DNA of 64,000 bases, taken from positions 1-64,000 of IMG/VR virus record IMGVR_UViG_3300047157_000197, one strand, 5' to 3'. Both the position numbers and the translations under genes were made by a program. Positions 15,304-62,451 of this stretch are shown here, piece after piece. Each line of letters begins with the position of its first letter. Position 1 is the stretch's first letter. The notes below the pieces were generated by a model. That model was not told where the DNA came from. It searched no databases and saw only the letters and a program-made list of their open reading frames with translations.

Positions 15304-15787
15304 AAGACAGCTATTAATTATTGGATTTATTCTTATGGCAATAATAGTGAGAGTATTACCACATCCACCTAATGTTACACCAATACTTGCAATCGCTTTA
15401 TTTGGTGGAACTACATTTAAAAACAAATGGCTTGGTGTGTTACTACCTCTGATAGCAATGGGAATATCTGATATGTATTTAGGTTTTTATAGTATCTCTT
15501 ATTGGGTATATGGTTCGTTCTTTCTTGTTAGTATGTTAGGAACATATTGGAAAAAGATAGGGGTTAAGAATGTACTTATATCATCTTTAATCTTTTTTAT
15601 AATTACCAACTTTGGAGTTTGGTTAGGTGGTTATCCAAAAACAATAGAAGGGTTTTTACTTTGTTATACAATGGCAATACCTTTCTTTATAAACTCTATA
15701 TTAGGAAATTTATTTTTCAGTTATCTATTAAAGTATTCATTTAGATATTCTGAAAAGAAACTTATGCTCGGTTCGTCTATCGGTTAG
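15293..15787 (+). CDS. DUF6580-like putative transporter (ECF S-component-like)
   Basis: RVLPHPPNVTPILAIALFGG motif, multiple TMs; start moved to ATG 15293. Confidence 0.7.
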   Translation: MMNKRQLLIIGFILMAIIVRVLPHPPNVTPILAIALFGGTTFKNKWLGVLLPLIAMGISDMYLGFYSISYWVYGSFFLVSMLGTYWKKIGVKNVLISSLIFFIITNFGVWLGGYPKTIEGFLLCYTMAIPFFINSILGNLFFSYLLKYSFRYSEKKLMLGSSIG

Positions 15788-15837
15788 GACCTCAGGTTTT
15801 CATCCTGGTAAGAGGGGTTCGATTCCCCTACCGAGTA
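15766..15837 (+). tRNA. trnE: tRNA-Glu(TTC), no encoded CCA
   Basis: Acceptor GCTCGGT/ACCGAGT, anticodon arm CAGG-TTTTCAT-CCTG, T-loop TTCGATT. Confidence 0.93.
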
Positions 15838-15884
15838 CAACTATTGTTCATTGAAATATTGTTTAATTAAATAAAAATAAAATT

Positions 15885-16244
15885 ATGGAAACACTTTATA
15901 TTGTAATAGGTGCATTCTCATCCATTTTTATATTCCTTTTGGGATATGCGGTGAGTGGTGTGTTTAATGGAAAAAAAAGAGTAGATGAACTTGAGAAGTT
16001 CATTGATGTAACAGATGATAGAGTTACAGAAGTAGATAGAGAAAGAAACTTTTGGAAAGAAGATACTTACGCAACTCTTGAACGCTTAAACGAAGAAGAT
16101 GATAATATAAAAAAATTATTAGATTCAAGATTAGATAGATTAGAAAGTAGAATTATAGGTATGATTCCACCTACCAACGAAGAGTTGATGAAGCGAATCG
16201 AGAAAATAGAAGAAGAATCTTACAGATTAAGAATGAATATGTAA
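15885..16244 (+). CDS. N-terminal TM plus coiled-coil protein
   Basis: Hydrophobic N-terminus, heptad-rich remainder. Confidence 0.6.
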   Translation: METLYIVIGAFSSIFIFLLGYAVSGVFNGKKRVDELEKFIDVTDDRVTEVDRERNFWKEDTYATLERLNEEDDNIKKLLDSRLDRLESRIIGMIPPTNEELMKRIEKIEEESYRLRMNM

Positions 16245-16267
16245 GATATTAAATTGAACAATAGTTA

Positions 16268-16353
<86 letters not shown>

Positions 16354-16357
16354 AAAA

Positions 16358-16431
16358 GGGGAATTAGCTCAGTTGGCTAGAGCACTACGCTTGCACCGTA
16401 GGGGTCATCGGTTCGAATCCGATATTCTCCA
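16358..16431 (+). tRNA. trnA: tRNA-Ala(TGC)
   Basis: GGGGAAT/ATTCTCC acceptor with G3-U70, CTACG-CTTGCAC-CGTAG anticodon arm. Confidence 0.93.
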
Positions 16432-16472
16432 CAATGGTGGTATCACCACTAATTAATAATAATAATAAAAAC

Positions 16473-17326: not shown

Positions 17327-17401
17327 GCCTTTGTAGCTCAGCTGGCTAGAGCATCTGCATTTGTAATCAGAATGTCGTGGGTTCGAGTCCCTCCAAAGGC
17401 T
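17327..17401 (+). tRNA. trnT: tRNA-Thr(TGT) with an extra nucleotide in the anticodon stem
   Basis: GCCTTTG/CAAAGGC acceptor; TCTG(C)A-TTTGTAA-TCAGA anticodon arm. Confidence 0.82.
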
Positions 17402-17424
17402 CAATAATAATTTAAACAAAGTAA

Positions 17425-20098: not shown

Positions 20099-20644
20099 AT
20101 GGTTTTACAAAAAATATTATTTTCTAAAGAGGAATGTAATAAAATATTATCTTTTTCTAAAAGTTTTAAACAATCAACTGTTACCACTACATCTACATCT
20201 AATTCCCCCCACAAATTCACAATCTCTTATAACAAAGAACATAGAGATTCACTAACATCTAATGTTGATTGTCTTGAAATTGGAAAAATTATATTACCTA
20301 AAATCTCTTTATTGGATGATACTATAATATCAACACCTACAATAAACATGAATATAGTAAAGTATGAAGAAGGTCATTACTTTAAAAAACACCAAGATAG
20401 AAGTAGTGATAATTATTTTGAAAGAAAAAAAACATTAGTAGTACAACTATCCGAAGAAGATACATATAAAGGTGGTTCTTTACGAGTTTGGGAAAATGAA
20501 AAAAATCCATATATAACTGCTTCAAAGAAAATAGGAAACACAATTATATTTGATTCTGGTCATTATCATGAAGTTACTACATTGGAAGTAGGAACTCGAT
20601 ATGCATTGATATGTTGGTTAGAACCTAATAATTTAAAAAAGTAG
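20099..20644 (+). CDS. 2OG-Fe(II) oxygenase
   Basis: HQD, LVVQLSEEDTYKGG, HEV, RYALICW. Confidence 0.88.
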   Translation: MVLQKILFSKEECNKILSFSKSFKQSTVTTTSTSNSPHKFTISYNKEHRDSLTSNVDCLEIGKIILPKISLLDDTIISTPTINMNIVKYEEGHYFKKHQDRSSDNYFERKKTLVVQLSEEDTYKGGSLRVWENEKNPYITASKKIGNTIIFDSGHYHEVTTLEVGTRYALICWLEPNNLKK

Positions 20645-20684
20645 TTTTCTTTTGTTTAATAAACACCAAAAGTTATTTTAATTA

Positions 20685-20692
20685 TATTTATA
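20685..20692 (+). promoter_or_regulatory. Putative late promoter TATTTATA
   Basis: Upstream of the Hint protein. Confidence 0.5.
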
Positions 20693-20726
20693 TACAAACG
20701 ATAAACATTACAAAAGGAAATAAATA

Positions 20727-23021
20727 ATGAAAGGAACTTTATTCTCAGCGGATTTTATAGAAGATTCAAGCTCAAACCTTAGATTATTAGAATTAAATAC
20801 CGATACTGGTTTTATATCAAATACATTAGATACACGATTTGATTTTACAGCTTTCAACACAGTACTATCAACAAATAATATAACAGAGCTAGTTATTGTT
20901 TATAAAGATTTTCAAAAAAACTTTGTAACAACACTTGAATCATATATACAATCCAACGCAACATTTATAACAACAGTTACAAAACAAGTTGAGGATTCTG
21001 ATAGTATATATCCTACGGCAGTTACTGATGCTGCTGATAAGTTTATACTTAGGTTAGCATATGATGAAAACGCATTGTTTGATTCAACGTATTGTAAAGA
21101 AAGAGCAAATGTACAAAAATTATTTTATGATAATTCTGCAACAGGTTCTATACCTGAGTTTTATTATAGTGGTAGTGATTATGTTGTAAATACACTTACT
21201 AGTGATTTAAACGCACATTCAATTTTACCTGATTTAGTTGTTAAAGATAAAACAGAAACATTTAGTCCTTTAAGGTTTTTAAAACTTGGTAACGCAACAT
21301 CAGCTTCTGCAGATAGAATTAGTGATTACGTTAACAATTACATAGGAGATTCTCAAACAGTTGAAAAATTCCATTACAACAATGCAGATATTACAGCGGA
21401 TAATAAATTATCAGCTATAAGAATATTTGGGATTGTATATGGTTCAGATATTAATCATGTAGTTATTGGTCAATATAAAGTACCATCGTTTTTTGAAATA
21501 CCAACGGCCGATTCTTTATCTTATATAGAATCTAATAAATTAATAAATGAATACCAACCTAAACATTATTTTGAACTTACTTCAAATTATGTTAGACTTA
21601 CAACAGAAGATGCAATTCATAAAGATGAAGTAGTAATCACATCTACTGATGGTGAACTACAAGTAGAAAATGTAGTAACTGGTTCTCTGCTTAAATCAAT
21701 GTTTATTGCTGGGTCACCAGATACTGATGATTTAGATGTTTATAAACATTGGGTTGCAACTGGTTCTATACTTCCAAGCGGTTCGTTTGTAACACAATCA
21801 ATTGTTACTTCAGTTGAGGAAAGTTCGCTTGATAATTATGGTATGACTGGAGAAATTATATTAGCAAATGATGAAAAAATATATACATCTATAACAAAAA
21901 ATTTATTAGCATATAATACAAGTTCTAATGATTATAGATTCTTACAACAGTACGAACTAATACCATCAGAACATTTCTTAGTAGATAAAGATGATAATAA
22001 AATTAATATAGTAGCTAACAATGTTGCAGTATTAGATGATGCATCAATTGAAAATTATTATAGAATTGATGTTGAAACAACCGATTCATATTTTGTAAGT
22101 GCATCTGCAAATTCATTTATTGTTCACAATGCTCCATGTTTTATAGCAGGAACTAAAGTTCATATAGAAGAAAAAGGAATAACAAACATTGAAGATGTTG
22201 AAGTTGGAGATAAAGTTATTTCATACAACCACGATACAGACACATCAGAATATAAAGAAGTATTAAAGGTTAGAAAACAAGAAGATAAAAATGTTGTAAA
22301 ATATGTATTTGAAAATGGTACAGAATTAACAGGTACACCAGACCACCCATTGTTTGTAAATGGCAAAGGATACTCTTCATATTATCCAAAAGAAACACTT
22401 GAAGATAGTGGATTGGACGTAGAACAGATATTACTTGGTGATGAAGTTTTACATATAGATGGATATGGTGTAGTTATATCTGATATTATAGAGATAGAAG
22501 AAACACATACAGTTTATAATCTAGAAGAAGTAGAAGATAATCATAACTTTTTTGTAAACCAATTTTTGGCACACAATAGAGAAAGTTTACCTTGTTGTTT
22601 TATCGCAGGTACACAAATATCTTTATCTAATAACGATAGTAAAAATATAGAAGATATTATAATAGGTGATGAAGTAATAGGTTGGAAAGATGGTGAGTTT
22701 ACAAATGGTCTTGTAACTGAGTTAAAACCAACAATACTAGGTAACCGTTCTTTATATAATATCAACGATTTTGAATTAACATTTACAAGTGAACATCCAT
22801 TTTTAACAAAAGATGGTTGGAAATCAATTGCACCAGATAGTGGAACTGGTTATGGAATTTTAGAAGTAAATGATATTATCAATAAAGATGGTAAATGGAT
22901 TCAAATAAAAGAAATCAAAGAAGTTCAAGGAGATGCTGAATACAACACTCCAGTTTATAACTTTACAGTAAAGGATATTCGCAGTTATATTGCTGATGGT
23001 ATCGTAGTACATAACAAATAA
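20727..23021 (+). CDS. Protein with three tandem Hint (intein-like) domains, the first degenerate
   Basis: ...IVHN-AP-CFIAGTKV...TPDH...LAHN-RESLPC-CFIAGTQI...TSEH...VVHN-K. Confidence 0.85.
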   Translation: MKGTLFSADFIEDSSSNLRLLELNTDTGFISNTLDTRFDFTAFNTVLSTNNITELVIVYKDFQKNFVTTLESYIQSNATFITTVTKQVEDSDSIYPTAVTDAADKFILRLAYDENALFDSTYCKERANVQKLFYDNSATGSIPEFYYSGSDYVVNTLTSDLNAHSILPDLVVKDKTETFSPLRFLKLGNATSASADRISDYVNNYIGDSQTVEKFHYNNADITADNKLSAIRIFGIVYGSDINHVVIGQYKVPSFFEIPTADSLSYIESNKLINEYQPKHYFELTSNYVRLTTEDAIHKDEVVITSTDGELQVENVVTGSLLKSMFIAGSPDTDDLDVYKHWVATGSILPSGSFVTQSIVTSVEESSLDNYGMTGEIILANDEKIYTSITKNLLAYNTSSNDYRFLQQYELIPSEHFLVDKDDNKINIVANNVAVLDDASIENYYRIDVETTDSYFVSASANSFIVHNAPCFIAGTKVHIEEKGITNIEDVEVGDKVISYNHDTDTSEYKEVLKVRKQEDKNVVKYVFENGTELTGTPDHPLFVNGKGYSSYYPKETLEDSGLDVEQILLGDEVLHIDGYGVVISDIIEIEETHTVYNLEEVEDNHNFFVNQFLAHNRESLPCCFIAGTQISLSNNDSKNIEDIIIGDEVIGWKDGEFTNGLVTELKPTILGNRSLYNINDFELTFTSEHPFLTKDGWKSIAPDSGTGYGILEVNDIINKDGKWIQIKEIKEVQGDAEYNTPVYNFTVKDIRSYIADGIVVHNK

Positions 23022-23036
23022 TAAATAAAAAGAAAA

Positions 23037-23186
23037 ATGGCAAATACACCTCTATCAACTTATAAGACAATACCAGTTGCTGATTTATATACACGACCTT
23101 CGAGTGCATTAACTAGTGATGAATCAACTAAAAGTGATACTATATTAAGTAATTTTTTTACTTACTTTAAAGCGAAACACTCATAA
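23037..23186 (+). CDS. 49 aa hypothetical protein, missing from ORF track
   Basis: MANTPLSTYKTIPVADLYTRPSS...FFTYFKAKHS; A-rich leader. Confidence 0.5.
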   Translation: MANTPLSTYKTIPVADLYTRPSSALTSDESTKSDTILSNFFTYFKAKHS

Positions 23187-23205: not shown

Positions 23206-23934
23206 ATGGATATTTTGAAATATTGGAATAAAATTACATTTGATATAACATCTTTCAAATGGTTTTTATCCGAGAGAAAAAATAAAAGTTTTAAAACAAG
23301 TGGTTCTGATAGTACCACTAACAATCTTTATACTTACAACGACTTAGGATTTAGAGGTGATTCACTTCCTCTTGTTGGTAAAAAGTTAATGGCAGTTGGT
23401 TGTTCTCACACAGAAGGAATTGGTGTAAACGATAATCAAACCTGGCCTCACTACTTATCTAAACTCTTAAACTATTCACACATCAACTTTGGATTTACTG
23501 GTAGGAGTAATGATTATATAGCTAGATGTATCTTAACCTTTACCGAAGAAATAAAACCTGATTTAGTTTGTATAATGTATTCTTATCCAGAAAGACGAGA
23601 ATATTACACAAAAGAAAACGGAGTTGAACCATTTCACCCAAACCCTTGGGGATGGTTTTCAGAATCAAAAAATACAAATTATTTTAAATCTAAATTACAA
23701 CTATCGAATGATAATGAGGATTTTATAAATTGGTATAAAAATCATTTACTAATTACAAACTTTTTACAGAACAAGAACATTCCTTATATTTGGAATGGAA
23801 TATTTATTAACAATGAGTATGATGATGGTTTTAGATTTGATGGTGATTATAATATACCATATAACAACCACGCAACTCCAAACGAAAATAAAGATTACGC
23901 AAATAAATTATTTAATTTTATAAAGAAAAAATAA
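23206..23934 (+). CDS. SGNH/GDSL-like protein
   Basis: AVGCSHTEG, GRSNDYIAR, C-terminal NHATP. Confidence 0.65.
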   Translation: MDILKYWNKITFDITSFKWFLSERKNKSFKTSGSDSTTNNLYTYNDLGFRGDSLPLVGKKLMAVGCSHTEGIGVNDNQTWPHYLSKLLNYSHINFGFTGRSNDYIARCILTFTEEIKPDLVCIMYSYPERREYYTKENGVEPFHPNPWGWFSESKNTNYFKSKLQLSNDNEDFINWYKNHLLITNFLQNKNIPYIWNGIFINNEYDDGFRFDGDYNIPYNNHATPNENKDYANKLFNFIKKK

Positions 23935-26923: not shown

Positions 26924-28129
26924 ATGAAAGTAAAAAATTTAATATTCTATATTACTATTTTTATAGGATTAACCTCATGTGAAAAAGATTTTATTGATGA
27001 TGAGCTTTGTTGTGTACCACCACCTGTGGAAACAATGAAACTTGAATCATATTATAACCAAAAAAGTGGAATAGTATTTAGATGGGGACATTATACATCT
27101 AACTCAACCTCATCAGATATGGGTGAAGTTGGTGGTCATTTTGCTGGTGGACAAGCATACCATGATGTTAATAATGATGGATTTCAAGATATACTTGTTA
27201 CATACCATAGTGAAACAAACGAGTCATCTACTAATTGGTATTTAAATCAAGGAGATGATATACAATTTACAAAAACTTATTTAATAAACGAATCAACAAC
27301 AGGCTTATCTTCATACAAAATTCTTAAAACAGATGTTAATAATGATAATAGAGCAGATTTTATTTTATTAGGTGTAGATGAAACTGTACCAGGAAATTAT
27401 GGTGGAAACTTTACAGTTTTAAAACAAACAACCGAAGGAACCTTTGATGTTATTTCAATTGATGATGGAAATGGATTATGGTTTCACACCGGAGCTGCAG
27501 GAGATTTAAACAACGATGGTTTTGTTGATGTGGTTGGTGCAACGTATATTTGGTTAGGAGATGGAAATGGAAACTTTACTAATACAAATATTAGTGTTCA
27601 TGATTTTGGAGTTGAACCAGCATTAAGTTATGAGATACTTGATATAAACAACGATGGGTTTAATGATATAGTAGTAGGAACACAAGAACCAGGACCTGAT
27701 ATGTATGGAAGTACTTCGAGTATATTATTAGGTAAATCTATTTTTGGAGAGTATAATGTTATACCATTACCGAGTACCGAGACAACACATACAATGGATT
27801 TAGAATTTTTAGATTATGATAATGATGGTGATTTGGATATTTTAGAATTAAGGGGTGTTTCATCTGGTCATGATGAATACTCAACTTATACTTTTATACA
27901 TCTATATACAAATAACAATTTAACATTTACTTTGGATAACGATGTTTTTAGTGAAGCTATAGATGGTGGATATTTACTTGGAAGTGATGATAAAAATGGT
28001 TGGTCAAGAATAAAAATTGATGATATTGATAATGATGGAGTAGATGATATAGTACAAGATAACCACAATGATAGTAATTATAACGGATTAAAAAAAATTA
28101 ACGGAAATTGGAAAAAATATCAATTTTAA
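26924..28129 (+). CDS. Lipoprotein with FG-GAP/VCBS repeats (beta-propeller)
   Basis: Lipobox LTSC; repeats DVNNDGFQD, DVNNDNRAD, DLNNDGFVD, DINNDGFND, DYDNDGDLD, DIDNDGVDD. Confidence 0.82.
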   Translation: MKVKNLIFYITIFIGLTSCEKDFIDDELCCVPPPVETMKLESYYNQKSGIVFRWGHYTSNSTSSDMGEVGGHFAGGQAYHDVNNDGFQDILVTYHSETNESSTNWYLNQGDDIQFTKTYLINESTTGLSSYKILKTDVNNDNRADFILLGVDETVPGNYGGNFTVLKQTTEGTFDVISIDDGNGLWFHTGAAGDLNNDGFVDVVGATYIWLGDGNGNFTNTNISVHDFGVEPALSYEILDINNDGFNDIVVGTQEPGPDMYGSTSSILLGKSIFGEYNVIPLPSTETTHTMDLEFLDYDNDGDLDILELRGVSSGHDEYSTYTFIHLYTNNNLTFTLDNDVFSEAIDGGYLLGSDDKNGWSRIKIDDIDNDGVDDIVQDNHNDSNYNGLKKINGNWKKYQF

Positions 28130-46783: not shown

Positions 46784-48205
46784 ATGTCGTTCCAAGTATT
46801 CAAAACAAATATGAGTTTATGGATGCAAACACCAGATAAACTAGCTACTGGTAATGCAGAATCATATCAAGATTTCGCGGATAAATTAACCGCAGAATAT
46901 GATATTGCCGTAAAAAGTGGTTACCAAACAATTAATTTGGTTAGGGTAAGTAAAGGTAATACCGAATTAATGAAATCATTAATAACTATTGCGTGTTTAA
47001 CTGCATTAAATAAACAAGAGGGTAAACATAACTTTATAGATGAAATTGGAAAAGCCGTATTAGGTTATTGGACAGGGTGTCAACTAACATCAGGTATACC
47101 ACCACTACTTCCTGCATTTGGAGCAATAAGAAATATATCAACAATATACGCGTTTTGTAGTTCACCTGGTACTTGGACACCAACTGGTTTAAACGAACCA
47201 ACTGATGATAGTGATATATTTTTAGATAATCTTATAAGTGCTATGTTAATACATTTAACAAGTTTAAATTTTATTTATTTTACATTATCAATATATCCAG
47301 GTCCTGTAACACCACCTGCACCTGGTTTTTTATTTTCACAAGGTTATACAATTTCACCTTCAACCAAATCACCTGTGAATTTAATACAAATAGTTGAGGA
47401 AATAATAAACACACAAGTTACCGATACATCAGATACCTTAACTGAAAAAGAAATTACATTATATAAACAAGAAAAGGAAAGTGCACAAACTATTATTAAT
47501 GATGATGCACAACCAGAACAAGCAAAACAAGTTGCAGAAGAATTTACTAAAAGAGTAACACAATTAATATCAACAAAAGCACATGATTCTACTCCTGTTT
47601 TTTATTCCGAAGAAGAACTTAAACAAATTGATGCACTACAACCAGATGAGTTTAAATGTGAAAGTGGAAGAAGGGTTGTAGAAATTGCAAGAGGTGATAT
47701 TGGAATATGTGAATATAAAAACAGAAACTATGGTGGGTTTGGGCCAGGAGAACAAAGAAATGCCTCTGGTAGAATTGATGAAATGGTAAACACGACTGGA
47801 TTGGATAATGAAGGAAATGTACAAAGAACAGGTAAAGGATATTTTTGGTGTGCAGGAGCAACAAGTCAATGGTGGAAAGATGCGGGATTATCATTACCTA
47901 CTTATAATTCAACAGGTGGTCCTGCCTTATGTAATCGTTGGTTAGAGTGGGGTAGAGAAAACGGTTATTTTTCTTCAATACCAAAAGAGGGTGCTGCTAT
48001 TTTATATAGAGGTGGACGAAAGCCAGGAGCTGTTCACATTGGTATTGTAGAAAGTATTATTCCAGGTATTGGTGTTGGAACCATAGAAGGAAACACAAGT
48101 GGTGGTGCAGCTTTTGCTGATAATGGGGGTGGATGTTATCGAAAAGTAGCCAAATGGAGTAAAGGAAATATTATAGGTTTTGTAAATCCACCCGATTGCG
48201 TATAA
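46784..48205 (+). CDS. Structural protein with C-terminal CHAP amidase domain
   Basis: FWCAGATS (Cys), HIGIV (His), TIEGNTS. Confidence 0.75.
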   Translation: MSFQVFKTNMSLWMQTPDKLATGNAESYQDFADKLTAEYDIAVKSGYQTINLVRVSKGNTELMKSLITIACLTALNKQEGKHNFIDEIGKAVLGYWTGCQLTSGIPPLLPAFGAIRNISTIYAFCSSPGTWTPTGLNEPTDDSDIFLDNLISAMLIHLTSLNFIYFTLSIYPGPVTPPAPGFLFSQGYTISPSTKSPVNLIQIVEEIINTQVTDTSDTLTEKEITLYKQEKESAQTIINDDAQPEQAKQVAEEFTKRVTQLISTKAHDSTPVFYSEEELKQIDALQPDEFKCESGRRVVEIARGDIGICEYKNRNYGGFGPGEQRNASGRIDEMVNTTGLDNEGNVQRTGKGYFWCAGATSQWWKDAGLSLPTYNSTGGPALCNRWLEWGRENGYFSSIPKEGAAILYRGGRKPGAVHIGIVESIIPGIGVGTIEGNTSGGAAFADNGGGCYRKVAKWSKGNIIGFVNPPDCV

Positions 48206-49293: not shown

Positions 49294-51318
49294 ATGGCAT
49301 TAAATAGTATAAATAGAAATCCAAATAGTGGTAGAGATATTAAGTATCTTAATAAAGATTTTTCTCAATTTAGACAAAATCTAATTGAGTACGCAAAAAC
49401 TTATTTCCCAACAACCTATTCAGATTTTAATGAAGCATCACCTGGAATGATGTTTATAGAAATGGCATCATATCTTGGAGATGTACTTTCATATTATACA
49501 GATGATACTTTAAAAGAATCGTTAATAACAACAGCAGAAGATAGAGAGAACATAATTGCACTGGCCGAGTACTTGGGTTATAAACCAAAAGTAACCTCTC
49601 CAGCGATTGTTAAATTGAGTGTATATCAAACAGTTCCAGTCATTGGTGCAGGTACAACCGAAGTTAGACCCGATGATAGATATTATTTAAGAATACCAGA
49701 AGGAATGACAGTAACTGCCACAACTCAAGGACAACAATTTAGAAGTACTGAAATGGTAGATTTTGCATCTGAGGATGATAGAGAAGTTTCAATTTATAGA
49801 ACGGATGATGATGGAGAACCAACTCTTTATTTAATTAAAAAATATGTAAATGCAATATCAGGTCAATTGGTAAGTGTAACTCATAATTTTGGTTCATCTC
49901 CTTCTCAATTTTCTAAAATACCTTTAGTTGAAAATAATATAATAGATATTGTAGATGTAAGAGATTCCAATGGAAATAAATGGTATCATGTTCCTTACCT
50001 AGCACAAGAAATGGTTTTTTCTGACTACGCAACAAGTGATACAACAGATAAAGAGTTAGCACAATTTAAAGAATCGGTACCAAGTATTTTAAAAACTTTA
50101 AAAACAACGAGAAGATTTACAACAAAAGTAAATGCAGATAATACAACAACTCTTGTATTTGGTGCAGGAAACTCAACTTCATCAGATGAGCAATTAATTC
50201 CAAACTTTAAAAATGTTGGTTTAGGATTAAAATCTTCAATTGATAATTTAGGTGCATCTTTTGACCCATCAAATTTTTTAAAAACAACATCATACGGACA
50301 GGCACCAACTGGTGAATTTACAATTGATTATATTATAGGTGGTGGAGTTGGTTCTAATGTTGGTGTTGGAGAATTGGTACAACTAGATAGAATAACTTTT
50401 CAAGATGATAGAGAAACCTTTACAACAGATGCAGAAAGACGTTTACTACAACAATGTAAAAATTCAGTAGCATGTGATAACGAGGAAGCTGGTACAGGTG
50501 GTAAGGGTGCAGATACATCCGATGAAATTAAACAAAACGCATTAGCTAATTTTGGTTCACAAAATAGAGCAGTAACAAGAAAAGATTACCAAGTAAGAGC
50601 ACTTTCATTACCTGCAAAGTATGGTGGAATTGCTAAAGCATATTGTGCACCAGATGGTGAACTTGATAACAACTCACCTTCTTCTATTCTTACAGATAAA
50701 AATTCTTTAGAAGAATTTGTAGGATTGGTAGAACAATTAAAAGATTCAGATTCATCTCAGCAAGAAATTAAAAATAGAGTTGTAAAATATCTTGGTAGTA
50801 AAAAGAAAAACATAACTGAAAAAAATAACCCATTTGCAATTAACTTATATGTTTTAGGATATAATTCAGATAAAAATCTTTCAACATTAAATCAAGCTAT
50901 TAAAGAAAATTTAAAAACATATATAAGTGAATATAGAATGTTAACAGATGGTATTAATATTTTAAATGGATTTATTATTAACATTGGTGTTGAATTTGAA
51001 ATAAAAGTTTACAATGGGTATAATAAAAGACAAGTACTTACAAGAACTCAGATAGAAATACAAAATTATTTCAATATTGATAAATGGGCATTTAATATGC
51101 CAATTAATATTTCTGAGGTAGAGTTATTAATAGCAGGTGTAGAGGGAGTTCAATCTGTACCAAAGTGTGAAATCGTTAACAAATGTTTAGGAAACTATTC
51201 ACAAAATTCATATAACATAATAGATGCAACTAAAGGTAAGATAGTTTATCCATCTTTAGACCCATCGATATTTGAAGTTAAGTTTCCAAATAAAGATATA
51301 AGAGGGAGAGTAGTATAA
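49294..51318 (+). CDS. Baseplate wedge subunit, T4 gp6-like
   Basis: DFSQFRQNL, SDFNEASPGMMFIE, YLGYKP, QNRAVTRKDY. Confidence 0.85.
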   Translation: MALNSINRNPNSGRDIKYLNKDFSQFRQNLIEYAKTYFPTTYSDFNEASPGMMFIEMASYLGDVLSYYTDDTLKESLITTAEDRENIIALAEYLGYKPKVTSPAIVKLSVYQTVPVIGAGTTEVRPDDRYYLRIPEGMTVTATTQGQQFRSTEMVDFASEDDREVSIYRTDDDGEPTLYLIKKYVNAISGQLVSVTHNFGSSPSQFSKIPLVENNIIDIVDVRDSNGNKWYHVPYLAQEMVFSDYATSDTTDKELAQFKESVPSILKTLKTTRRFTTKVNADNTTTLVFGAGNSTSSDEQLIPNFKNVGLGLKSSIDNLGASFDPSNFLKTTSYGQAPTGEFTIDYIIGGGVGSNVGVGELVQLDRITFQDDRETFTTDAERRLLQQCKNSVACDNEEAGTGGKGADTSDEIKQNALANFGSQNRAVTRKDYQVRALSLPAKYGGIAKAYCAPDGELDNNSPSSILTDKNSLEEFVGLVEQLKDSDSSQQEIKNRVVKYLGSKKKNITEKNNPFAINLYVLGYNSDKNLSTLNQAIKENLKTYISEYRMLTDGINILNGFIINIGVEFEIKVYNGYNKRQVLTRTQIEIQNYFNIDKWAFNMPINISEVELLIAGVEGVQSVPKCEIVNKCLGNYSQNSYNIIDATKGKIVYPSLDPSIFEVKFPNKDIRGRVV

Positions 51319-52376
51319 TGTATTATTTTGTAACAGCATCCAAAGATTCAACAATTTATCTTCAACAACCAGGTCAAAATACTGGTAGAGATGAGATATT
51401 AGAAATATCTAAAATTTATTATGGTAATCTTAAAGATATTGCTCGTTCTTTAATTAAATTTGATACAGCACCACTATCTGAATCTATTGCAAGTGGAGAA
51501 ATAACAATGAGTTCTGCAGAAATGCTTTTAACACATTGTGTAGGAACTGAAATACCAAATGAATATACAATTTATGCATATCCTATATCGCAATCATGGG
51601 ATATGGGTATTGGAACACGATTTGATAAGATTTCAACCGATGGAGTATCTTGGAATAGTAGAAAAACATCTACTTCTTGGATAATTGGTTCGGCATCATT
51701 AGAAAGTTCAGGTTCATATAATGGTAAAGGTGGGGTATGGTACACTGGTTCTTCCGCAAGTCAATTATTTAATTACGAATCAACTGATATTTCAATGGAT
51801 GTATCTCAATCAATATCATCATGGGTTGAGGGAGATTTACCAAACGAAGGATTTATATTAAAACATGATTCTGCTAAAGAAAACGATACGATTGATTATG
51901 GACAATTAAAATTCTTTTCAAAAGAAACAAATACTATATATCAACCGAAATTAAGAATTGGATGGGATGATTCTAGTTTTATAACTGGTTCACTAACAGA
52001 ACTTACATCTGATGATATTCATGTTACTTTTAAAAGATTAAAAACTAGATATAAAGTTGGAAGCAAACCAGAAATTAGAGTTTTCGGTAGAGAAAAATAC
52101 CCACTTAAAACTTATGCAAATGAATATGCTTATACAGATGTTTATTATTTACCAACTTCAAGTTATTATCAAGTTAAAGATATAGTTACGGATGACGTAG
52201 TTGTGCCTTTTGGAGATTATACAAAATTATCTTGTGATTCAAATGGAAATTATTTTAAACTTAATTTAACAAATTGGGAATATAATAGAGATTATTATTT
52301 AGAAATTAAAATAGATAGAGATGGTGTAGTTGAATACTTTGTAGATAAAGATTTAACTTTTACTGTGGAAAAATAA
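51318..52376 (+). CDS. Structural protein (DNRLRE-like beta domain plus Ig-like tail)
   Basis: KDSTIY...NTG.DEILEI...RSLIKFD...FFSKET..QPKLRI. Confidence 0.55.
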   Translation: MYYFVTASKDSTIYLQQPGQNTGRDEILEISKIYYGNLKDIARSLIKFDTAPLSESIASGEITMSSAEMLLTHCVGTEIPNEYTIYAYPISQSWDMGIGTRFDKISTDGVSWNSRKTSTSWIIGSASLESSGSYNGKGGVWYTGSSASQLFNYESTDISMDVSQSISSWVEGDLPNEGFILKHDSAKENDTIDYGQLKFFSKETNTIYQPKLRIGWDDSSFITGSLTELTSDDIHVTFKRLKTRYKVGSKPEIRVFGREKYPLKTYANEYAYTDVYYLPTSSYYQVKDIVTDDVVVPFGDYTKLSCDSNGNYFKLNLTNWEYNRDYYLEIKIDRDGVVEYFVDKDLTFTVEK

Positions 52377-55309: not shown

Positions 55310-58300
55310 ATGCCACATAATAATAGAGAACATATAAAACCAACCCAACGAGGGAAACGAAAAGGCCAAATCATTACTGATGGAGAGAAAGTTAATGGTC
55401 AAGTTGTGTATGGTACTTGGGAATGGAATGGAAGTCGATGGATTGATATTACAACCGATTCGGATGTATTTAGTAGAGATGAAGATGTAGATAAATCATC
55501 TGATAATCCAAGTAGTTCTAAAAATGGAGTTGATATATTTGATTCAAAGCTAACAGATGGTGATTCAAATACAAAAGGTAGTGATTTAGATACAGAAGAT
55601 AGTGATTTAAAGCCAGATGGTGAAAACCCACTTTCACTAGCTCCGAGTATAGAAATAACTGTTAAGGCAACCAAACCTTCAGCAATATTTATTGATGGAG
55701 AAGACACGCTATTACAAACATCTCATACATTTAATTATACGGCAAAAGAATTATTAACTCCAAAAATATTTACAGTTAAAGCAAGTGAAAGTTTTATATC
55801 AACGGATGTATATAAAGTTTCTGCAGTTCAAAAAGAATTTGGAAAAGGAGTTGAAGACTTAGACCTAGAGAATAAAAAAGGTTTGGTTAAATTTTCTTAC
55901 TATGAGTTTATAATATTAAAAAACAATAAAATATTTACAGAATTTACTCTAGACTATGATACCTTATTAGAAAATAGAGCAGCAACATTAGATTTTTCTA
56001 TTGATACTGATGGTACAGTAATCACACCAGAGCCAGAAAAAACATTAGTAGTAATTACATCAAATGTATCATCAAATGATATAATAAGATATCAAACAGC
56101 TCCTGATAATCAAACTGATTTTTTACTTGCTGAAGATGAAATTGAATTAGAGGTTACTTCAAATGTAAAAGATTTAGATAAATTTATTCAATTTTATGGT
56201 GTAGGAATTGATGATACAACTCATACAGTTGAATATACTATTAATACTCCAAATAATAGAGGAGGACAGACCGTAACTAATATTGATAGTGGAAAAGTAT
56301 TATTACAAGCAGGAACAACAAATATAACAGTTGATGCGATAAAAATACCACGAACTGATACACCAGGAATTCCACTTTTAAATATTTCTTCTAATCAATT
56401 AGTATATAACATAAATGGTGAAGAATTATTACAAATTCCATATAGAACTACTAATGCGGATTTAGTAGAATATTCAATAGGAAGTATTAAAAGACAAATT
56501 GGAAGTAGTGGTAGTATCACTCTAGATACAAAAGATTTTACAAACGGAGTTGGTACTTATACATTATATGCTCAAGCAAGAAGTTCTAATGGTGGTAGTG
56601 ATGTTAAAAAAATTATTATTGTTGTAGAAAGTAGAGAATATATACCTGGACCAGATATAACTCATATTAATTATCCACAAAATATTAAAGGAGCAGATTT
56701 TAAACAATTTAATGTCCCATTTAATGTTAGTTGGCAATCAATCAATACCGATTATATTAGAATCTATTCAGGAAAGTATGATGTTGAAGCTGAAAATAAC
56801 TATTACTTAGGTCAGTTTTCAGAATCAGGAGTTGCAACCTTTACTGTTGAAGATGTTTTAAGAAATGCAAGAAGAGAATTTTCTGAAGATGATAATATAT
56901 TACAATTTAAATTATTATTAGTTCCATTTAATTCTCAAGGTGATAAATTAACTGCTGGTAAAATAGAAGAAATAAATATTACATTTGATAAAGGTGATTT
57001 AGATTTAAGAAGAGGCGATGTAATTGGTGATATTAGAAAAGCATTTGAATATTGTTTTGATTATTCTGATTTTGATGAACCCACTTCACCATTCTTAACT
57101 CATTATTTACATTTAGGAGATGGAGATAATAAATTAATATCAACATATGGTATTGATGATGAAACGTTCTCAGAATATGAATTTGTAAATGATACAAATC
57201 AGAGAAAAAAGATTAAAGAAAATAAATCTATTGTTTTAAAATTATACGAACCTTTAGAAAATAAAATAGATGTAAACGATAAAATTTGGATTTCAAAAAT
57301 ACAATCAATACCTTTAATTGACCAAATAACACTATTAGATGATGTAACTTCTGATTGTATTCCATTAACACCAAATTTAAGTTTAGAATTAAATGATGAT
57401 ATTGGTTATCAAATTTATGATGATTTAGTAGCAAGTGGTTCAACATCATCAGAAGCAATAATACAAGAATTTGTTTCAGGTAGTGGATTCTCACTTGATA
57501 CACTTGAGTTAGAATATACATCGGGTAGTACTTACCAATGGGAAAATTTTGTAAAATACTCATCAGCAAAAGAAAGAGTTGCAAACTTTTATTATAAAAT
57601 AAAATTATTAGAATCACATAGAAGTAAACATGAATTACTTTCAAATGCTACTGGTTCTGCAGGTTCAGTTGCGAGTAAAAACGAACAAAAAAGAATACTT
57701 GGAAAAATATCTGAAATTAAACAAAACTTTGATGCATTTGAAAAACATCTTTATACTGTAAATGGTTCATTACAATACCCAAAAAATGGTAGTGTTGTTG
57801 GTGATATTAAACTTACCGATACTGGTAGTATAGTAAACCCATCTGATACCGCTGCAGTTAATTGGTATAATTCAATTTATACAGATGCAGCTTTATATGA
57901 TAGAAATAGCACAGAAAGATTAGTTAATAATTTACCAAGTCATATTCAAGAAGATGATAAAGGACAAGAATTTATTTTATTCTTTGATATGATTGGTCAA
58001 CATTTTGATATTTTATATCATTATATTAAACGATTATCTAAATCTAAAAAAACAGAAAACAAATTTGAAAATGGTATTATAAATGACTTAATGTATGAAA
58101 TGTTAAGTTCACTTGGTTGGGATGCCGATTTAGGATTATCATCAGAAACACTTTGGGAATATGCATTTGGTGAACATTCGGATGGTACAGAAATATCATC
58201 AATGTCAGGTAAAAGTAGACAAGAAGAAACTTGGAGAAGAATATTAAATAATTTACCATACCTATACAAACACAAAGGAACTAAAAGAGCTATTCACGCT

Positions 58301-60499
58301 GCATTATCTATTTATGGAATTCCAAATTCTATGTTAACTATAATGGAGTTTGGTGGACCAAAAGATACTACTACATCAAAATTAGTTAAATATACATATG
58401 ATGATAGCACATCTGCATTAAATATTAATGGTTCTAAAAAATTAACACTTCCTTGGAAAGTTTATAATGGCTCATATCCAAGTGCAGTTGAAATGAGAGT
58501 AGAAACTAATACTAAACAAAATCAAACTATACTTTCAAGTAGTGGTTGGAGTTTAGATTTAAATTATACATCAGGTTCAAATGCTAATTTACAATTAAAC
58601 GTATTATCTGGTTCAACTAATTATTCTGCATCAACAGAAGATTTTCCTTACTTTAACCAAGATTATACACAACTAGTTGTAAATAGAATAACTGGTTCAA
58701 CTACAACATTTGAAGTTCATGCAAAAGAAGGATTCCAAGAAAGAATTAGAAACGCAGTAAGTGCATCAGTAACAGTTGGAAATTCAAATGATTGGAATAG
58801 TGGAAGTGAATTGATTGTAGGTGGAGATAGTTCAGATTTTACTGGTTCAATAGATGAAATTAGATTATGGACAACTCCATTATCAGAATCACGAATTGAA
58901 AACCATGCATTAAATGGTGATGCAATTGATGGTAATCATATATCTTCTTCAACTGAAGATTTATTATTAAGAATTGATTTTGAACATCCAAGAAACTTAA
59001 ATTCAACTAGTGATAATTGGAGAAACACAATTGTTTCGGCATCTATGGTTTCAGATGGATTAACTTCGGTATCGGGTTCAATAGAAAATATTTCTCCTAA
59101 TACAAGTTATGCAAACTTTATAACTGCATCTAATTTTCCATCGGCATCATATCCACATGGGTTTACATTTTACAATAGAAAAAATACTTCAAATGTACCA
59201 AGTGTTGGAATAGCAGTTGGAGATAAAGTTAGATTTGAAGAACAATCATTAACATCAAATTTATCTTATAGAAGTAGAGCAACAAAAAAATCATACGATA
59301 CTTCACCATTAGATTCAGATAAATTAGGATTATTTTTCTCACCAGCAAAAGAATTAAATCTTGATATTGTAAAAACAATAGGTGATTTTAATATAGATGA
59401 TTTGATTGGAGACCCAAGTGATTACTACCAAGATAGTTATTCATCATTAGATTCTTTTAGAAAGTATTATTTTAATCGATATAACGTAGATTTCCACGAG
59501 TATATCCAATTAGTAAGGTATATTGATAAATCATTATTTAGTCTCTTAGAATCCCTTGTTCCTGCAAGAGCTAAGGTTACTACTGGTTTATTAATTGAAC
59601 CACATATGTTGGAGAGAAGTAAAATTAAAAGAGTTAAACCAACTGCAGAAAATAATAAAATTGAAGCTTCTATTAATATTCAAGATAATGTAGTTATAGA
59701 ATCATCAAAAGACAATTATTTAGTTGAACTTAATTTAATAGAACAATCAACAATATCTGGTTCTACAAATTTCTATGATGTTGAAATACAAGAAGTAATA
59801 AATAGTAATCTTGTAGGAACAAAAGATAATTATGAAAGTATAATATCTGCATCTAATACTATAACTCCAAGTGGAACCATTACACGAAATTCTGGTTCTG
59901 ATATGGGAGGATTTGATATTTCGGTCAATGCTAGGTTTACTCAAGCAATTCAAGGTGAATACGATTCAACTGCATATCAACAAATAGGAATGGAACCTGA
60001 TTCATTAACAGTTGGTGGTTTTGGATTATATGGTAGTGGTTCAAATGCAATTATTACAAAATTAGATAAAAACAATAACTTTGTTAGAGAACGAAATAAA
60101 GTATTTTTATTAAAAGAGGCATATACGATTAATATTCCGAAGAATATAAGTTCGCTTGATTCTTCACTAGGAACAGAAATAGAATCAGTAACCGAATATA
60201 GACATAAATTAACTATTTTACCATTTACTGGTTCTGATGGAAACGAATCAATAGACCCAATTGTAACTGGTAGTATTGTAGAAGTAACACCTTTAAATGG
60301 TGCATTCCCAACACATTACAAAAATACAGGAGATTTAACAAGTGGTATGGAAAATTCATTTTTTAATGGTTCAAAACAAACAAGTGCAACTACTTTAGAT
60401 GGTAGTTCACCAGTTCAATCATTTACTACTAATCCAAATACTCTTAGAGTTAATGAGAGTGGTAGAGGTTCAGGTGAACCAATATTAGAAGTAGAATAA
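55310..60499 (+). CDS. Large baseplate wedge-like protein (1729 aa) with LamG-like domain
   Basis: DMIGQHFD, NNLPYLYKHKGTKRAI...EFGG (phage-tail-P2/gp7-like), FTGSIDEIRLW. Confidence 0.65.
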   Translation: MPHNNREHIKPTQRGKRKGQIITDGEKVNGQVVYGTWEWNGSRWIDITTDSDVFSRDEDVDKSSDNPSSSKNGVDIFDSKLTDGDSNTKGSDLDTEDSDLKPDGENPLSLAPSIEITVKATKPSAIFIDGEDTLLQTSHTFNYTAKELLTPKIFTVKASESFISTDVYKVSAVQKEFGKGVEDLDLENKKGLVKFSYYEFIILKNNKIFTEFTLDYDTLLENRAATLDFSIDTDGTVITPEPEKTLVVITSNVSSNDIIRYQTAPDNQTDFLLAEDEIELEVTSNVKDLDKFIQFYGVGIDDTTHTVEYTINTPNNRGGQTVTNIDSGKVLLQAGTTNITVDAIKIPRTDTPGIPLLNISSNQLVYNINGEELLQIPYRTTNADLVEYSIGSIKRQIGSSGSITLDTKDFTNGVGTYTLYAQARSSNGGSDVKKIIIVVESREYIPGPDITHINYPQNIKGADFKQFNVPFNVSWQSINTDYIRIYSGKYDVEAENNYYLGQFSESGVATFTVEDVLRNARREFSEDDNILQFKLLLVPFNSQGDKLTAGKIEEINITFDKGDLDLRRGDVIGDIRKAFEYCFDYSDFDEPTSPFLTHYLHLGDGDNKLISTYGIDDETFSEYEFVNDTNQRKKIKENKSIVLKLYEPLENKIDVNDKIWISKIQSIPLIDQITLLDDVTSDCIPLTPNLSLELNDDIGYQIYDDLVASGSTSSEAIIQEFVSGSGFSLDTLELEYTSGSTYQWENFVKYSSAKERVANFYYKIKLLESHRSKHELLSNATGSAGSVASKNEQKRILGKISEIKQNFDAFEKHLYTVNGSLQYPKNGSVVGDIKLTDTGSIVNPSDTAAVNWYNSIYTDAALYDRNSTERLVNNLPSHIQEDDKGQEFILFFDMIGQHFDILYHYIKRLSKSKKTENKFENGIINDLMYEMLSSLGWDADLGLSSETLWEYAFGEHSDGTEISSMSGKSRQEETWRRILNNLPYLYKHKGTKRAIHAALSIYGIPNSMLTIMEFGGPKDTTTSKLVKYTYDDSTSALNINGSKKLTLPWKVYNGSYPSAVEMRVETNTKQNQTILSSSGWSLDLNYTSGSNANLQLNVLSGSTNYSASTEDFPYFNQDYTQLVVNRITGSTTTFEVHAKEGFQERIRNAVSASVTVGNSNDWNSGSELIVGGDSSDFTGSIDEIRLWTTPLSESRIENHALNGDAIDGNHISSSTEDLLLRIDFEHPRNLNSTSDNWRNTIVSASMVSDGLTSVSGSIENISPNTSYANFITASNFPSASYPHGFTFYNRKNTSNVPSVGIAVGDKVRFEEQSLTSNLSYRSRATKKSYDTSPLDSDKLGLFFSPAKELNLDIVKTIGDFNIDDLIGDPSDYYQDSYSSLDSFRKYYFNRYNVDFHEYIQLVRYIDKSLFSLLESLVPARAKVTTGLLIEPHMLERSKIKRVKPTAENNKIEASINIQDNVVIESSKDNYLVELNLIEQSTISGSTNFYDVEIQEVINSNLVGTKDNYESIISASNTITPSGTITRNSGSDMGGFDISVNARFTQAIQGEYDSTAYQQIGMEPDSLTVGGFGLYGSGSNAIITKLDKNNNFVRERNKVFLLKEAYTINIPKNISSLDSSLGTEIESVTEYRHKLTILPFTGSDGNESIDPIVTGSIVEVTPLNGAFPTHYKNTGDLTSGMENSFFNGSKQTSATTLDGSSPVQSFTTNPNTLRVNESGRGSGEPILEVE

Positions 60500-61224: not shown

Positions 61225-62451
61225 ATGGCACAAATACAAGGACAAGCGGGAGTAAATTTAACACAAGAGTTGGCTAACTATTTACAAGCCAGTAGTGGTA
61301 ATTTAACCTCAGAACAATTAATAAAAATAACCAACCAATATTTAAGTGGAGGTGATAAGTTAGGTGCAACTGGTGGTTCAATCTCAAATGGTATCTATAA
61401 AAGATTCGGAGAGTTTGACCAAGTAAATGGAAAAGTACAAGTTGTAACTACTGGTCTTTGGAGTGGAGATACTGGAAGTTTATCTTCTTTCTTTACATCT
61501 TCAACACAAGAAGTAGCAGCAAGTTCAAACTATTATTTAAATGCTTATGACTCATCAGCCATTTCAGATGTACAATTCGCAGTTGCTTATGGACATAAAT
61601 TTGGTAGTGGTTCTATATCACTTGCAAATGATGATTCTTCAACATTGGCAACTAAAGCAACTTATTCACAATATAAATCAATTCTTTTAGAACAAGGAGA
61701 TGATAAATTTGAAGTACCAAACAGTTCAGGTTCACTTCATAGTATAGATGATATTTATGTTATTAATTTATCAAGAGCAAGATATAAAGAAAAAATGGAT
61801 GCAGGAAACTGGTCATTAAGTTTAAGTGGTTCTAATGGAATCTCTACATTAATTGATGATAGTGGAAAGAAATTCTCAGATACAGTTGGAAAAGCGGGTA
61901 GAGTATTTGATGTAGTAAGTGGTTCACTTAATCTAGGTTCAGAAAATGAAGCAACAATAGTAGCAAAATATTCAAGTGGTTCACAAGCACAAGGACAAGG
62001 GTTTGGTAAATTTTATCCAGACCAAGGAATTATAATTCTTAATCCATCTGCAGTTGAATCATCAATTGGTTCATCAATAGATAAAGATTCTAGTGATGGT
62101 GGTGTATTAGGATATGGAATTTCTGCAGAAGCAAAAAATCATTTCTTATTATACAATGCAATTAAAGGTGGTGGAGATTTTGAAGCAAGAAGAACAGAAA
62201 ACGTTTCTACTTCACATTACTTTATAAGAGCAACAAATAGAGAATTTAACTTTTCTAATAATCCATCATTTGTAACTGGTTCAGATAATTCATTTGTTGA
62301 ATCATCTTTTGAAAAAGACCCAAAAACATTTATTACAACTATTGGATTATATAGTGATTCTAATGAAATGTTAGCAGTGGCTAAAACATCTCAACCAATT
62401 GCTAAATCGTTTGATAAAGAAGTATTAATCAAAGTAAAACTTGATTTTTAA
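61225..62451 (+). CDS. Virion structural protein
   Basis: FNFSNNPSF...ITTIGLY...LAVAKTSQPI C-terminal motif. Confidence 0.65.
   Translation: MAQIQGQAGVNLTQELANYLQASSGNLTSEQLIKITNQYLSGGDKLGATGGSISNGIYKRFGEFDQVNGKVQVVTTGLWSGDTGSLSSFFTSSTQEVAASSNYYLNAYDSSAISDVQFAVAYGHKFGSGSISLANDDSSTLATKATYSQYKSILLEQGDDKFEVPNSSGSLHSIDDIYVINLSRARYKEKMDAGNWSLSLSGSNGISTLIDDSGKKFSDTVGKAGRVFDVVSGSLNLGSENEATIVAKYSSGSQAQGQGFGKFYPDQGIIILNPSAVESSIGSSIDKDSSDGGVLGYGISAEAKNHFLLYNAIKGGGDFEARRTENVSTSHYFIRATNREFNFSNNPSFVTGSDNSFVESSFEKDPKTFITTIGLYSDSNEMLAVAKTSQPIAKSFDKEVLIKVKLDF

Follow-up and report, generated by a model that had tools for sequence, protein, structure and literature searches.

A phage protein with chained Hint domains on an ATP-grasp-like core and a small partner gene: a candidate self-processing polyprotein

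Hint domains, among them the bacterial intein-like (BIL) domains, are usually explained by what they release or join. The 64,000-nucleotide (nt) window analyzed here, which spans the first 64 kb of a 275,970-bp virus record in IMG/VR (IMGVR_UViG_3300047157_000197; locus L004), raises the question of what such domains do when almost nothing lies between or after them. On its plus strand, an open reading frame (ORF) at 20727..23021 starts with ATG and encodes 764 amino acids (aa) followed by a stop codon. An earlier, sequence-only reading had described in it three Hint domains chained head to tail with exteins of two, six and one residues (AP, RESLPC and K). We reproduced these exteins and the coordinates of the ORF, Hint2 and Hint3 exactly. 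Judging from its sequence, the protein probably processes itself by BIL-type chemistry, shedding the Hint chain from a ligase-like core, and works with a small partner protein encoded just downstream. The partner gene, the constant core formed by the N-terminal domain (N domain) and Hint1, and the near-invariant terminal lysine were all absent from the sequence-only reading, and these three change the picture.

Catalytic residues and junctions of the Hint chain

Hint2 (aa 471-617; 22137..22577) and Hint3 (aa 624-763; 22596..23015) are complete mini-Hint modules, located on the plus strand like all other parts of the protein. Matches to Pfam models of the Hint clan were AXH (4.9e-18), Intein_splicing (5.4e-14), Hint (8.8e-11), PT-HINT (1.4e-8) and Vint, with AXH being the strongest Pfam match of Hint2. 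Both modules scored above the cut-offs of the NCBIfam models intein_Nterm and intein_Cterm, and the only other NCBIfam match to the protein was a far sub-threshold one to PmurB. By sequence, they also matched solved BIL domains, namely Tetrahymena BIL2 (6tmm/6y75, E = 1e-7) and the BIL domain of C. thermocellum (2lwy, 5e-5), and Hint2 and Hint3 matched each other with 30% identity (E = 1e-13). Their lengths, about 148 aa for Hint2 and 140 aa for Hint3, are of mini-Hint size, so neither contains an endonuclease insert, in line with the sequence-only reading.

We then compared the catalytic positions in 109 aligned homologs, whose overall identity is only about 45-60%. In Hint2, C471, T537, H540 and H616 were invariant and N617 was present in 108 sequences; in Hint3, C624, T687, H690, H762 and N763, together with the following K764, were invariant. 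Complete catalytic sets maintained over such divergence suggest that the chemistry is in use.

Hint1 (aa 296-468; 21612..22130) is degenerate. It had no Pfam match, and its BLASTP comparisons with Hint2 and Hint3 were non-significant. However, in hhalign, a profile of the Hint1 region of the family aligned over the whole domain with Hint3 (probability 90%, E = 1.8e-7) and, at 55% probability (E = 1.7e-5), with Hint2, whereas the negative control, the N domain against Hint2, gave 0.05%. An AlphaFold2 (AF2) model of aa 289-471 had a predicted local distance difference test (pLDDT) score of 89, and its best Foldseek matches were BIL2, the C. thermocellum BIL domain, DnaB and DnaE inteins and Hedgehog (1at0, 6tyy), with E values of 5e-8 to 4e-5 and template-modeling (TM) scores, by target, of 0.7-0.8. 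Hint1 therefore has a predicted Hint fold, a point on which the sequence-only reading had depended; its start at about A296 (nt 21612) also agrees with the span of about 21600-22130 proposed there.

The residues of Hint1 likewise match the earlier description of a Hint domain that lacks Cys1 and the block-B His but ends in His-Asn. Position 1 is Ala296 (Gly in most homologs), and block B reads Lys391-Asn392 in the window and Lys-His in 82 of the 109 homologs. In block F (D-V-E-x-x-D) and the terminal V-H-N, E450, D453, H467 and N468 were present in all 109 sequences, D448 in 100, and V449 and V466 in 105. The His-Asn of Hint1 is also retained in distant forms of the family, where it is trailed by short Lys-rich or Cys-rich tails only, and this conservation is consistent with a core whose ancestral activity was C-terminal cleavage. 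Relatives without Hint2 and Hint3 (hereafter Hint-less relatives) carry Pro/Lys-rich tails at this place (PAPPPKL, KVKIEPPK or K). In another set of sequences (P0262, P0264, P0265, P0268, P0271, P0275, P0282-P0285 and locus L084), a Cys-rich tail of 40-90 aa, often terminated by Lys, directly follows the His-Asn, which suggests that Hint1 releases a disulfide-rich peptide in these forms.

The AXH match raises the alternative that the Hints are non-catalytic binding or scaffold domains, like the AXH domains of ataxin-1 and HBP1, in a protein that stays intact, and the loss of part of the catalytic set in Hint1 would agree with this. However, invariant Cys1, T-x-x-H and His-Asn in both complete modules, as well as the His-Asn of Hint1, are unexpected for pure binders. 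Because AXH belongs to the same structural clan, its match reflects the fold rather than lost chemistry. We regard this alternative as very improbable.

The junctions between the modules are short. Between Hint1 and Hint2 lies Ala-Pro (aa 469-470; 22131..22136), and among 138 close homologs this linker was AP in 89, absent in 29, A in 10 and SP in 7; Pro precedes Hint2 in 91 of the 109 aligned sequences. The linker between Hint2 and Hint3, RESLPC in the window (aa 618-623; 22578..22595), began with R or K in every form listed for the 138 homologs, was 2-17 aa long and mostly ended in C or T. In the alignment, the residue directly after Hint2 (+1) was R in 91 sequences and K in 18. Other clades have spacers of one or two residues (R, RA, KA or KF), and one-residue spacers indicate that the spacers have no function of their own. 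After the last His-Asn, a single Lys (Lys764; 23016..23018) is the sole remaining residue; such a Lys was found in 137 of the 138 homologs, in all aligned sequences and in most viral loci. The +1 residues in the window are thus Ala469, Arg618 and Lys764, with no Cys, Ser or Thr among them, and across the family these positions hold A/S (or, where the linker is missing, Cys1 of Hint2), R/K and K. As the sequence-only reading had anticipated, canonical class-1 splicing is therefore not expected, and the comparison with BIL domains is apt.

Measured against canonical inteins, Hint2 and Hint3 have Cys1 and T-x-x-H, whereas Hint1 has neither (Ala296, Lys391-Asn392). No module is followed by C, S or T in the window, and the chain does not join two halves of a host protein, as the C-exteins comprise one to six residues and nothing folded lies downstream. 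On descriptive criteria, the complete modules correspond to A-type BIL domains, since they have Cys1 and His-Asn, lack a +1 nucleophile and an endonuclease, and occupy a variable part of a protein that is not conserved; the sequence basis of this descriptive assignment is the matches to 2lwy and 6tmm. A-type BIL domains cleave, and can splice, in the absence of a +1 nucleophile (PMC7765530, a review).

In the mechanism that we propose, Cys471 and Cys624 would turn the Pro470-Cys471 and Cys623-Cys624 bonds into thioesters, and Asn468, Asn617 and Asn763 would cyclize, cutting the bonds to Ala, Arg and Lys, respectively. Hint1, having no nucleophile, could cut only after Asn468. Because there is no +1 nucleophile and nothing folded downstream, the outcome would be self-excision or shedding of the Hint chain rather than the joining of protein halves. 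With plain cleavage as with BIL-type ligation, the core would keep a short tail, rich in Pro and terminated by Lys, that resembles those of the Hint-less relatives; the tail of a ligated product would be AP-RESLPC-K. At the C-terminus of an enzyme that acts together with its small partner, the Hint chain would be an appendage able to cleave itself off. We infer the cleavages, and any order among them, from residue conservation and homology, on which basis auto-processing is the best-supported reading and a reasonably probable one. In this respect the sequence-only reading held, but its suggestion that free Hint modules and tiny peptides are the useful products found no support.

A constant core with a variable number of modules

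To place the protein in its family, we collected relatives from several sources. A search with the full-length protein returned 894 homologs (E <= 1e-3), nearly all from marine or other aquatic metagenomes and none of them named. An exhaustive search with the N-domain profile yielded 323 clusters at 50% identity, and in all complete proteins listed, the domain stood at the extreme N-terminus. In IMG/VR, 117 relatives were found, of which the best 80 loci were kept and the 79 complete loci were counted; genome sizes in this lineage, drawn from marine and other aquatic metagenomes, reach 225-326 kb. A scan of 185,579 species genomes gave a single match, a high-coverage contig of 2.8 kb (CAYNGR010000277.1; L091) binned with a Cyanobium metagenome-assembled genome, which is probably phage DNA. 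One short contig among so many species genomes, against 117 relatives in IMG/VR, indicates that the family is essentially phage-borne. The contig points weakly to picocyanobacteria as hosts of some family members and is insufficient for host assignment.

Hidden Markov models (HMMs) of the four parts of the protein revealed that the N domain and Hint1 are constant and are followed by a short Lys/Pro-rich tail, by a Cys-rich tail of 40-90 aa, or by one, two or three complete Hints. Among the 79 viral loci, one complete Hint followed the core in 23, two in 47 and three in 9. Counting the Hint copies in homologs, as the sequence-only reading had proposed, thus gave zero to three complete modules beyond the core. 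True four-Hint proteins, about 910 aa long, occur in other clades. The 916-968-aa homologs in the clade of the window also seemed to be candidates for four-Hint forms, but their additional length is an insertion of about 160 aa within the N domain (at about aa 276-465) that is dissimilar to Hints and is carried by P0019, P0030, P0043, P0100 and 25 others. This insertion had no Pfam match; by sequence, it resembles a beta-sandwich or a carbohydrate-binding module (LEDFE...G..C.KV...GWET).

In a tree of 91 modules, the modules clustered by their position in the chain (m1, m2 and m3) across loci, indicating ancient duplicates passed on vertically rather than recent, selfish copies. This bears on a second alternative, in which Hint2 and Hint3 are domesticated or residual mini-inteins that have no function themselves and splice out by the nucleophile-independent BIL route, restoring an AP-RESLPC-K tail. 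Such a tail resembles those of the Hint-less relatives, every splicing-type residue except the +1 nucleophile is present, and A-type BIL domains can splice without that nucleophile (PMC7765530). However, the modules have no homing endonuclease and show positional orthology over deep divergence, and their catalytic residues show no decay in the 109 sequences, although loss or degradation should be more frequent in a neutral passenger. One-residue spacers, and terminal modules of a Hedgehog-like type that are unable to splice, also speak against passengers. Overall, we consider this alternative improbable.

The N domain and the small partner gene

The N domain (aa 1-295; 20727..21611) had been described as faintly ATP-grasp-like, with a Foldseek comparison suggested as a check. 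An AF2 model of aa 1-300 (pLDDT 89) matched E. coli YjfC (7uk6, E = 9e-7) and YgiC (7uka, 1e-6) in the Protein Data Bank (PDB), followed by eukaryotic glutathione synthetases (6e-6 to 1e-4), with a Foldseek probability of 1.00 and TM scores of 0.35-0.43 across these matches. The resemblance thus came out in favor of the earlier description. Neighbors of the domain in the ESM Atlas carried ATP-grasp_3, TTL, YheCD and GSP_synth. D9, E22 and N24, invariant in 53 sequences, lie on a predicted beta-hairpin that opens the protein and form a D ... E-x-N pattern, which we take to be the Mg/ATP-site motif of ATP-grasp enzymes. In the branch of GspS and the eukaryotic glutathione synthetases, this motif stands ahead of the nucleotide-binding part. 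In the best local hhalign match to E. coli YgiC, which is not significant alone, D9, E22 and N24 fell on D102, E114 and N116. A predicted ATP-grasp-like domain with GspS/glutathione-synthetase topology is supported by these results; the domain stands outside every curated sequence family, and we infer that it would act as a ligase.

Downstream of the gene, 15 nt past its stop codon, lies a plus-strand ORF of 49 aa (MANTPLSTYK...FFTYFKAKHS; 23037..23186). An ORF of 43-53 aa begins 0-100 nt (mostly <30 nt) past the gene in all 79 complete IMG/VR loci, in which the N-domain identity to the window is mostly 39-52%. It also stands beside one form with a Cys-rich tail (L084) and one short-tail form without Hint2 and Hint3. 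The 53 distinct partner sequences share a mean identity of 34%, and 46 of them end in H-[LSTM]; conserved residues are Y-K near the N-terminus, a Phe, and K-H ahead of the last residue. Searches with the 49-aa protein gave no lead in Pfam, NCBIfam, PADLOC or the ESM Atlas, its homolog search returned near-identical sequences only, and none of the PADLOC defence models was matched. Because the partner is present in every complete locus and also beside Hint-less forms, the two genes form a cassette whose constant members are the N-Hint1 core and the micro-protein. To this cassette, Hint2 and Hint3 add an accessory extension that is clade-specific but long-conserved.

A third alternative, covalent conjugation, unites the crosslinking idea of the sequence-only reading with the precedent of the Tetrahymena BUBL domains. 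In this case, the thioesters at Cys471 and Cys624, or the C-terminal succinimides, would be resolved not by water but by an amine of another protein, such as a Lys of the 49-aa partner or of a host or virion protein, so that the core or a Hint module would become peptide- or isopeptide-linked without E1, E2 or E3 enzymes. The solved domain closest to Hint3 in sequence and to Hint1 in structure is BIL2, which resolves its thioester through a Lys amine and thereby forms a Lys isopeptide (PMC8616854). The residue behind the last Asn is invariably Lys, that behind Hint2 is Lys or Arg, and the partner has conserved Lys residues in its N-terminal Y-K and C-terminal K-H. Hedgehog-like terminal modules of some relatives are also of a type that transfers an N-extein to a nucleophile. 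On the other hand, the Arg that follows Hint2 in most sequences offers no usable nucleophile, so conservation at that position looks like a requirement for charge. No target was identified, and the gene lies outside the structural module. Moreover, Hint-less relatives keep the partner gene, which argues that the role of the partner is independent of Hint thioesters. We consider conjugation possible but unlikely.

The last Hint is Hedgehog-like in eight viral loci (L020, L025, L028, L034, L045, L047, L068 and L082) and in six representative proteins (P0148, P0155, P0157, P0162, P0175 and P0216). These modules have no terminal His-Asn but a motif SGLGDN..LN..(F/Y)KRQ and an extension of about 25 aa, and they could only form and resolve an N-terminal thioester. 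Six representatives end in (K/N/T)-H-L, similar to the partner protein. We considered that in these forms the K-H-L end may have passed from the partner to the main protein. The partner lacked its usual K-H-x end in two of the four loci with a Hedgehog-like Hint for which this was compared, versus about 7 of the 53 distinct sequences elsewhere, but four loci are too small a sample to weigh this idea.

Combining the two genes, one may envisage a phage protein-tagging or priming system, in which the ATP-grasp-like domain would activate the conserved K-H-x-COOH end of the partner, about 47 aa long, or the Lys tail of the enzyme itself. The Hints would control or complete covalent attachment to a target, either through thioester or succinimide chemistry or as a timer that cleaves itself in several steps. 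If this were true, the cassette would represent an E1/E2/E3-independent conjugation pathway in bacteriophages. We offer it as a speculative extension that is rather improbable.

Several points weigh against self-processing by a ligase-like enzyme, which we nevertheless prefer. Proline at position -1 is unfavorable for the N-S acyl shift, so the N-terminal junction of Hint2, where it predominates, may be slow or regulated. The Hint1 of the window has Asn at the position of the block-B His of most homologs. Two or three Hints are kept although one would suffice for cleavage, and this is not accounted for; nor are the last residue that is always Lys, the internal Arg/Lys at +1 and the preferred Pro before Hint2. 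For the N domain, the ATP-grasp assignment comes from a predicted structure with moderate TM scores and a non-significant hhalign alignment. The domain had no Pfam match, including to the GSP_synth, GSH_synth_ATP and ATP-grasp models, and its profile retrieved nothing relevant among PDB sequences. Foldseek with the N domain against the BFVD viral models gave no match below 1e-3.

Known systems, source phage and surroundings

A-type BIL domains are said to have been described by Amitai et al. in 2003 and Dassa et al. in 2004. The complete modules resemble the A-type domain of C. thermocellum (2lwy) in mini-Hint size, in Cys1, T-x-x-H and His-Asn, in the absence of a +1 C/S/T and of an endonuclease, in their location in a variable part of a non-housekeeping protein, and in a sequence match (E = 5e-5); the structure match to that domain is the one of Hint1. 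In contrast to that domain, two or three modules stand head to tail here, with spacers of one to six residues and a single Lys at the end; they are fused to a phage ATP-grasp-like domain, and a degenerate, Asn-only Hint precedes them. The Tetrahymena BUBL proteins of the polyubiquitin locus (BIL2, 6tmm/6y75) likewise carry repeated BIL modules in one polyprotein without a +1 nucleophile, and Lys is relevant to thioester resolution there (PMC8616854). However, ubiquitin-like cargo flanks each BIL domain in BUBL, whereas no cargo domain lies between or after the Hints here and the sole folded N-extein is the ligase-Hint1 core.

Polymorphic toxins of the PT-HINT type also combine a constant N-terminal part, a Hint domain, a variable C-terminal part and a small downstream gene. 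The PT-HINT Pfam match (1.4e-8) and the Cys-rich tails after Hint1 in distant relatives recall that architecture. Unlike in such toxins, no toxin domain follows the Hints of the window, where Lys alone stands after Hint3, and the downstream ORF, being kept irrespective of the C-terminal part, does not behave as a cognate immunity gene. With Hedgehog and Hog proteins, the family shares the Hint fold (1at0 and 6tyy in Foldseek) and, in some relatives, an Asn-less last Hint with a short extension; it differs from them in that all modules of the window end in His-Asn and there is no sterol or adduct recognition region.

The N domain resembles ligases of the GspS family, that is, the YgiC/YjfC peptide-spermidine ligases and eukaryotic glutathione synthetase, in its predicted fold and early D...E-x-N motif, but it has no GSP_synth Pfam match, lacks the first ~100 residues of YgiC and is fused to Hints. 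In the passage of PMC12568646 that cites Pederick et al. 2023, enzymes of the YgiC/YjfC type activate a peptide C-terminal carboxylate.

One-residue spacers and a last extein of a single Lys imply that host-protein splicing, toxin release and ubiquitin-like dispensing, the usual explanations, do not apply. Literature searches covering ATP-grasp-Hint combinations, tandem Hints in phages and Hints of marine myoviruses found no paper on such a fusion, on extein-less head-to-tail Hint chains or on this phage family. The class of chemistry is known; what is new is the architecture, the invariant one-residue C-extein, the variable number of modules and the obligatory micro-protein partner. The fusion to a ligase-like domain and the obligatory micro-protein suggest an unrecognized post-translational chemistry of phages. 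The arrangement is widespread in phage metagenomes and readily testable through two small genes, and mini-Hints conserved with Pro/Cys at -1 and Lys/Arg at +1 may be of interest to protein engineers.

We further examined the phage itself. The window has a G+C content of about 30%, nearly all of its ORFs are on the plus strand, and its other annotated genes include tRNAs, PhoH, a 2OG-Fe(II) oxygenase, a carbamoyltransferase and a baseplate wedge protein. The nearest full-length relatives of the wedge protein are from Microcystis phage Mel-JY01, Flavobacterium 'immuto' phages and a 484-kb uncultured phage (36-42% identity). Together with the gene content, these relatives show the source to be an uncultured aquatic myophage with a large (jumbo) genome. 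Against 50,697 phage records, megablast with 8 kb around the gene gave zero nucleotide matches, and tblastn with the 764-aa protein matched only the Hint parts, in four Ruminococcus/gut phage records at ~31-33% identity, indicating that the protein has no cultured relative in that set.

Upstream of the gene, a Shine-Dalgarno-like AAGGA, read from the sequence, lies at 20714..20718 on the plus strand, 8 nt ahead of the ATG. Further upstream, at 20684..20693 on the same strand and 34 nt upstream of the ATG, is the promoter-like motif ATATTTATAT (often TATATTTATATA). This motif occurs 11 times in the window versus 2.5 expected, and ten copies are on the plus strand (6077, 10532, 18750, 20684, 45037, 48225, 60499, 60542, 62560 and 63739). 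Most of these lie 20-45 nt upstream of ORF starts (6103, 18776, 20727, 45067, 48255, 60578, 62587 and ~63780), several of them in the baseplate/tail region, while no ORF starts close to the copy at 10532. The motif probably represents a class of phage promoters. The T4 late box TATAAATA, tried as the late-type promoter claimed by the sequence-only reading, occurred at chance level (19 copies versus 20.7 expected); thus, a repeated motif does stand upstream of the gene, but it is not that box.

The same reading had linked the protein to the virion through this promoter and through seven [ST][GA]S triplets. The number of triplets is confirmed and exceeds expectation (7 versus 1.05, a count reached in 0 of 2000 shuffles); all lie in the N domain and Hint1 and none in Hint2 or Hint3, and several copies are conserved in homologs. 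High densities of the triplets (8-17 per 1000 aa) recur in four tail/baseplate-region ORFs (51318-52376, 55310-60499, 61225-62451 and 62587-63726); in most other ORFs they are rare. The enrichment of both ATATTTATAT and the triplets is real; it does not demonstrate presence in the particle. The neighbors of the gene are auxiliary (2OG-Fe(II) oxygenase, PhoH), the first motif-bearing ORF of the structural module (45067) begins about 22 kb further downstream, and no result supports the placement in the particle that ligation or crosslinking of virion components would require. In PHROGs, the Hint part matched families of unknown function only, and most neighboring and structural-module ORFs received no assignment.

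The 2OG-Fe(II) oxygenase gene is located at 20099-20644. Paralogs of the PF13640 type lie within 6 kb of the cassette in 68 of the 79 related loci and are adjacent to it in 27. We considered the oxygenase as a third cassette member, but its position varies between loci and we treat it as a feature of the neighborhood, which may merely mirror the abundance of such genes in this phage group. On the 3' side of the cassette, a 242-aa ORF (23206-23934) has a sub-threshold DUF6071 match and a GCSHTEG motif. A 401-aa ORF at 26924-28129 contains FG-GAP repeats (1.6e-22), and a 473-aa ORF just ahead of the baseplate genes (46784-48205) has a weak C-terminal CHAP/endolysin-like match. Finally, genes for tRNA-Glu, tRNA-Ser and tRNA-Ala are located at 15766-16432, and beside them, ARAGORN reported a tRNA-like gene with a two-base anticodon (tg) at 17327-17402.

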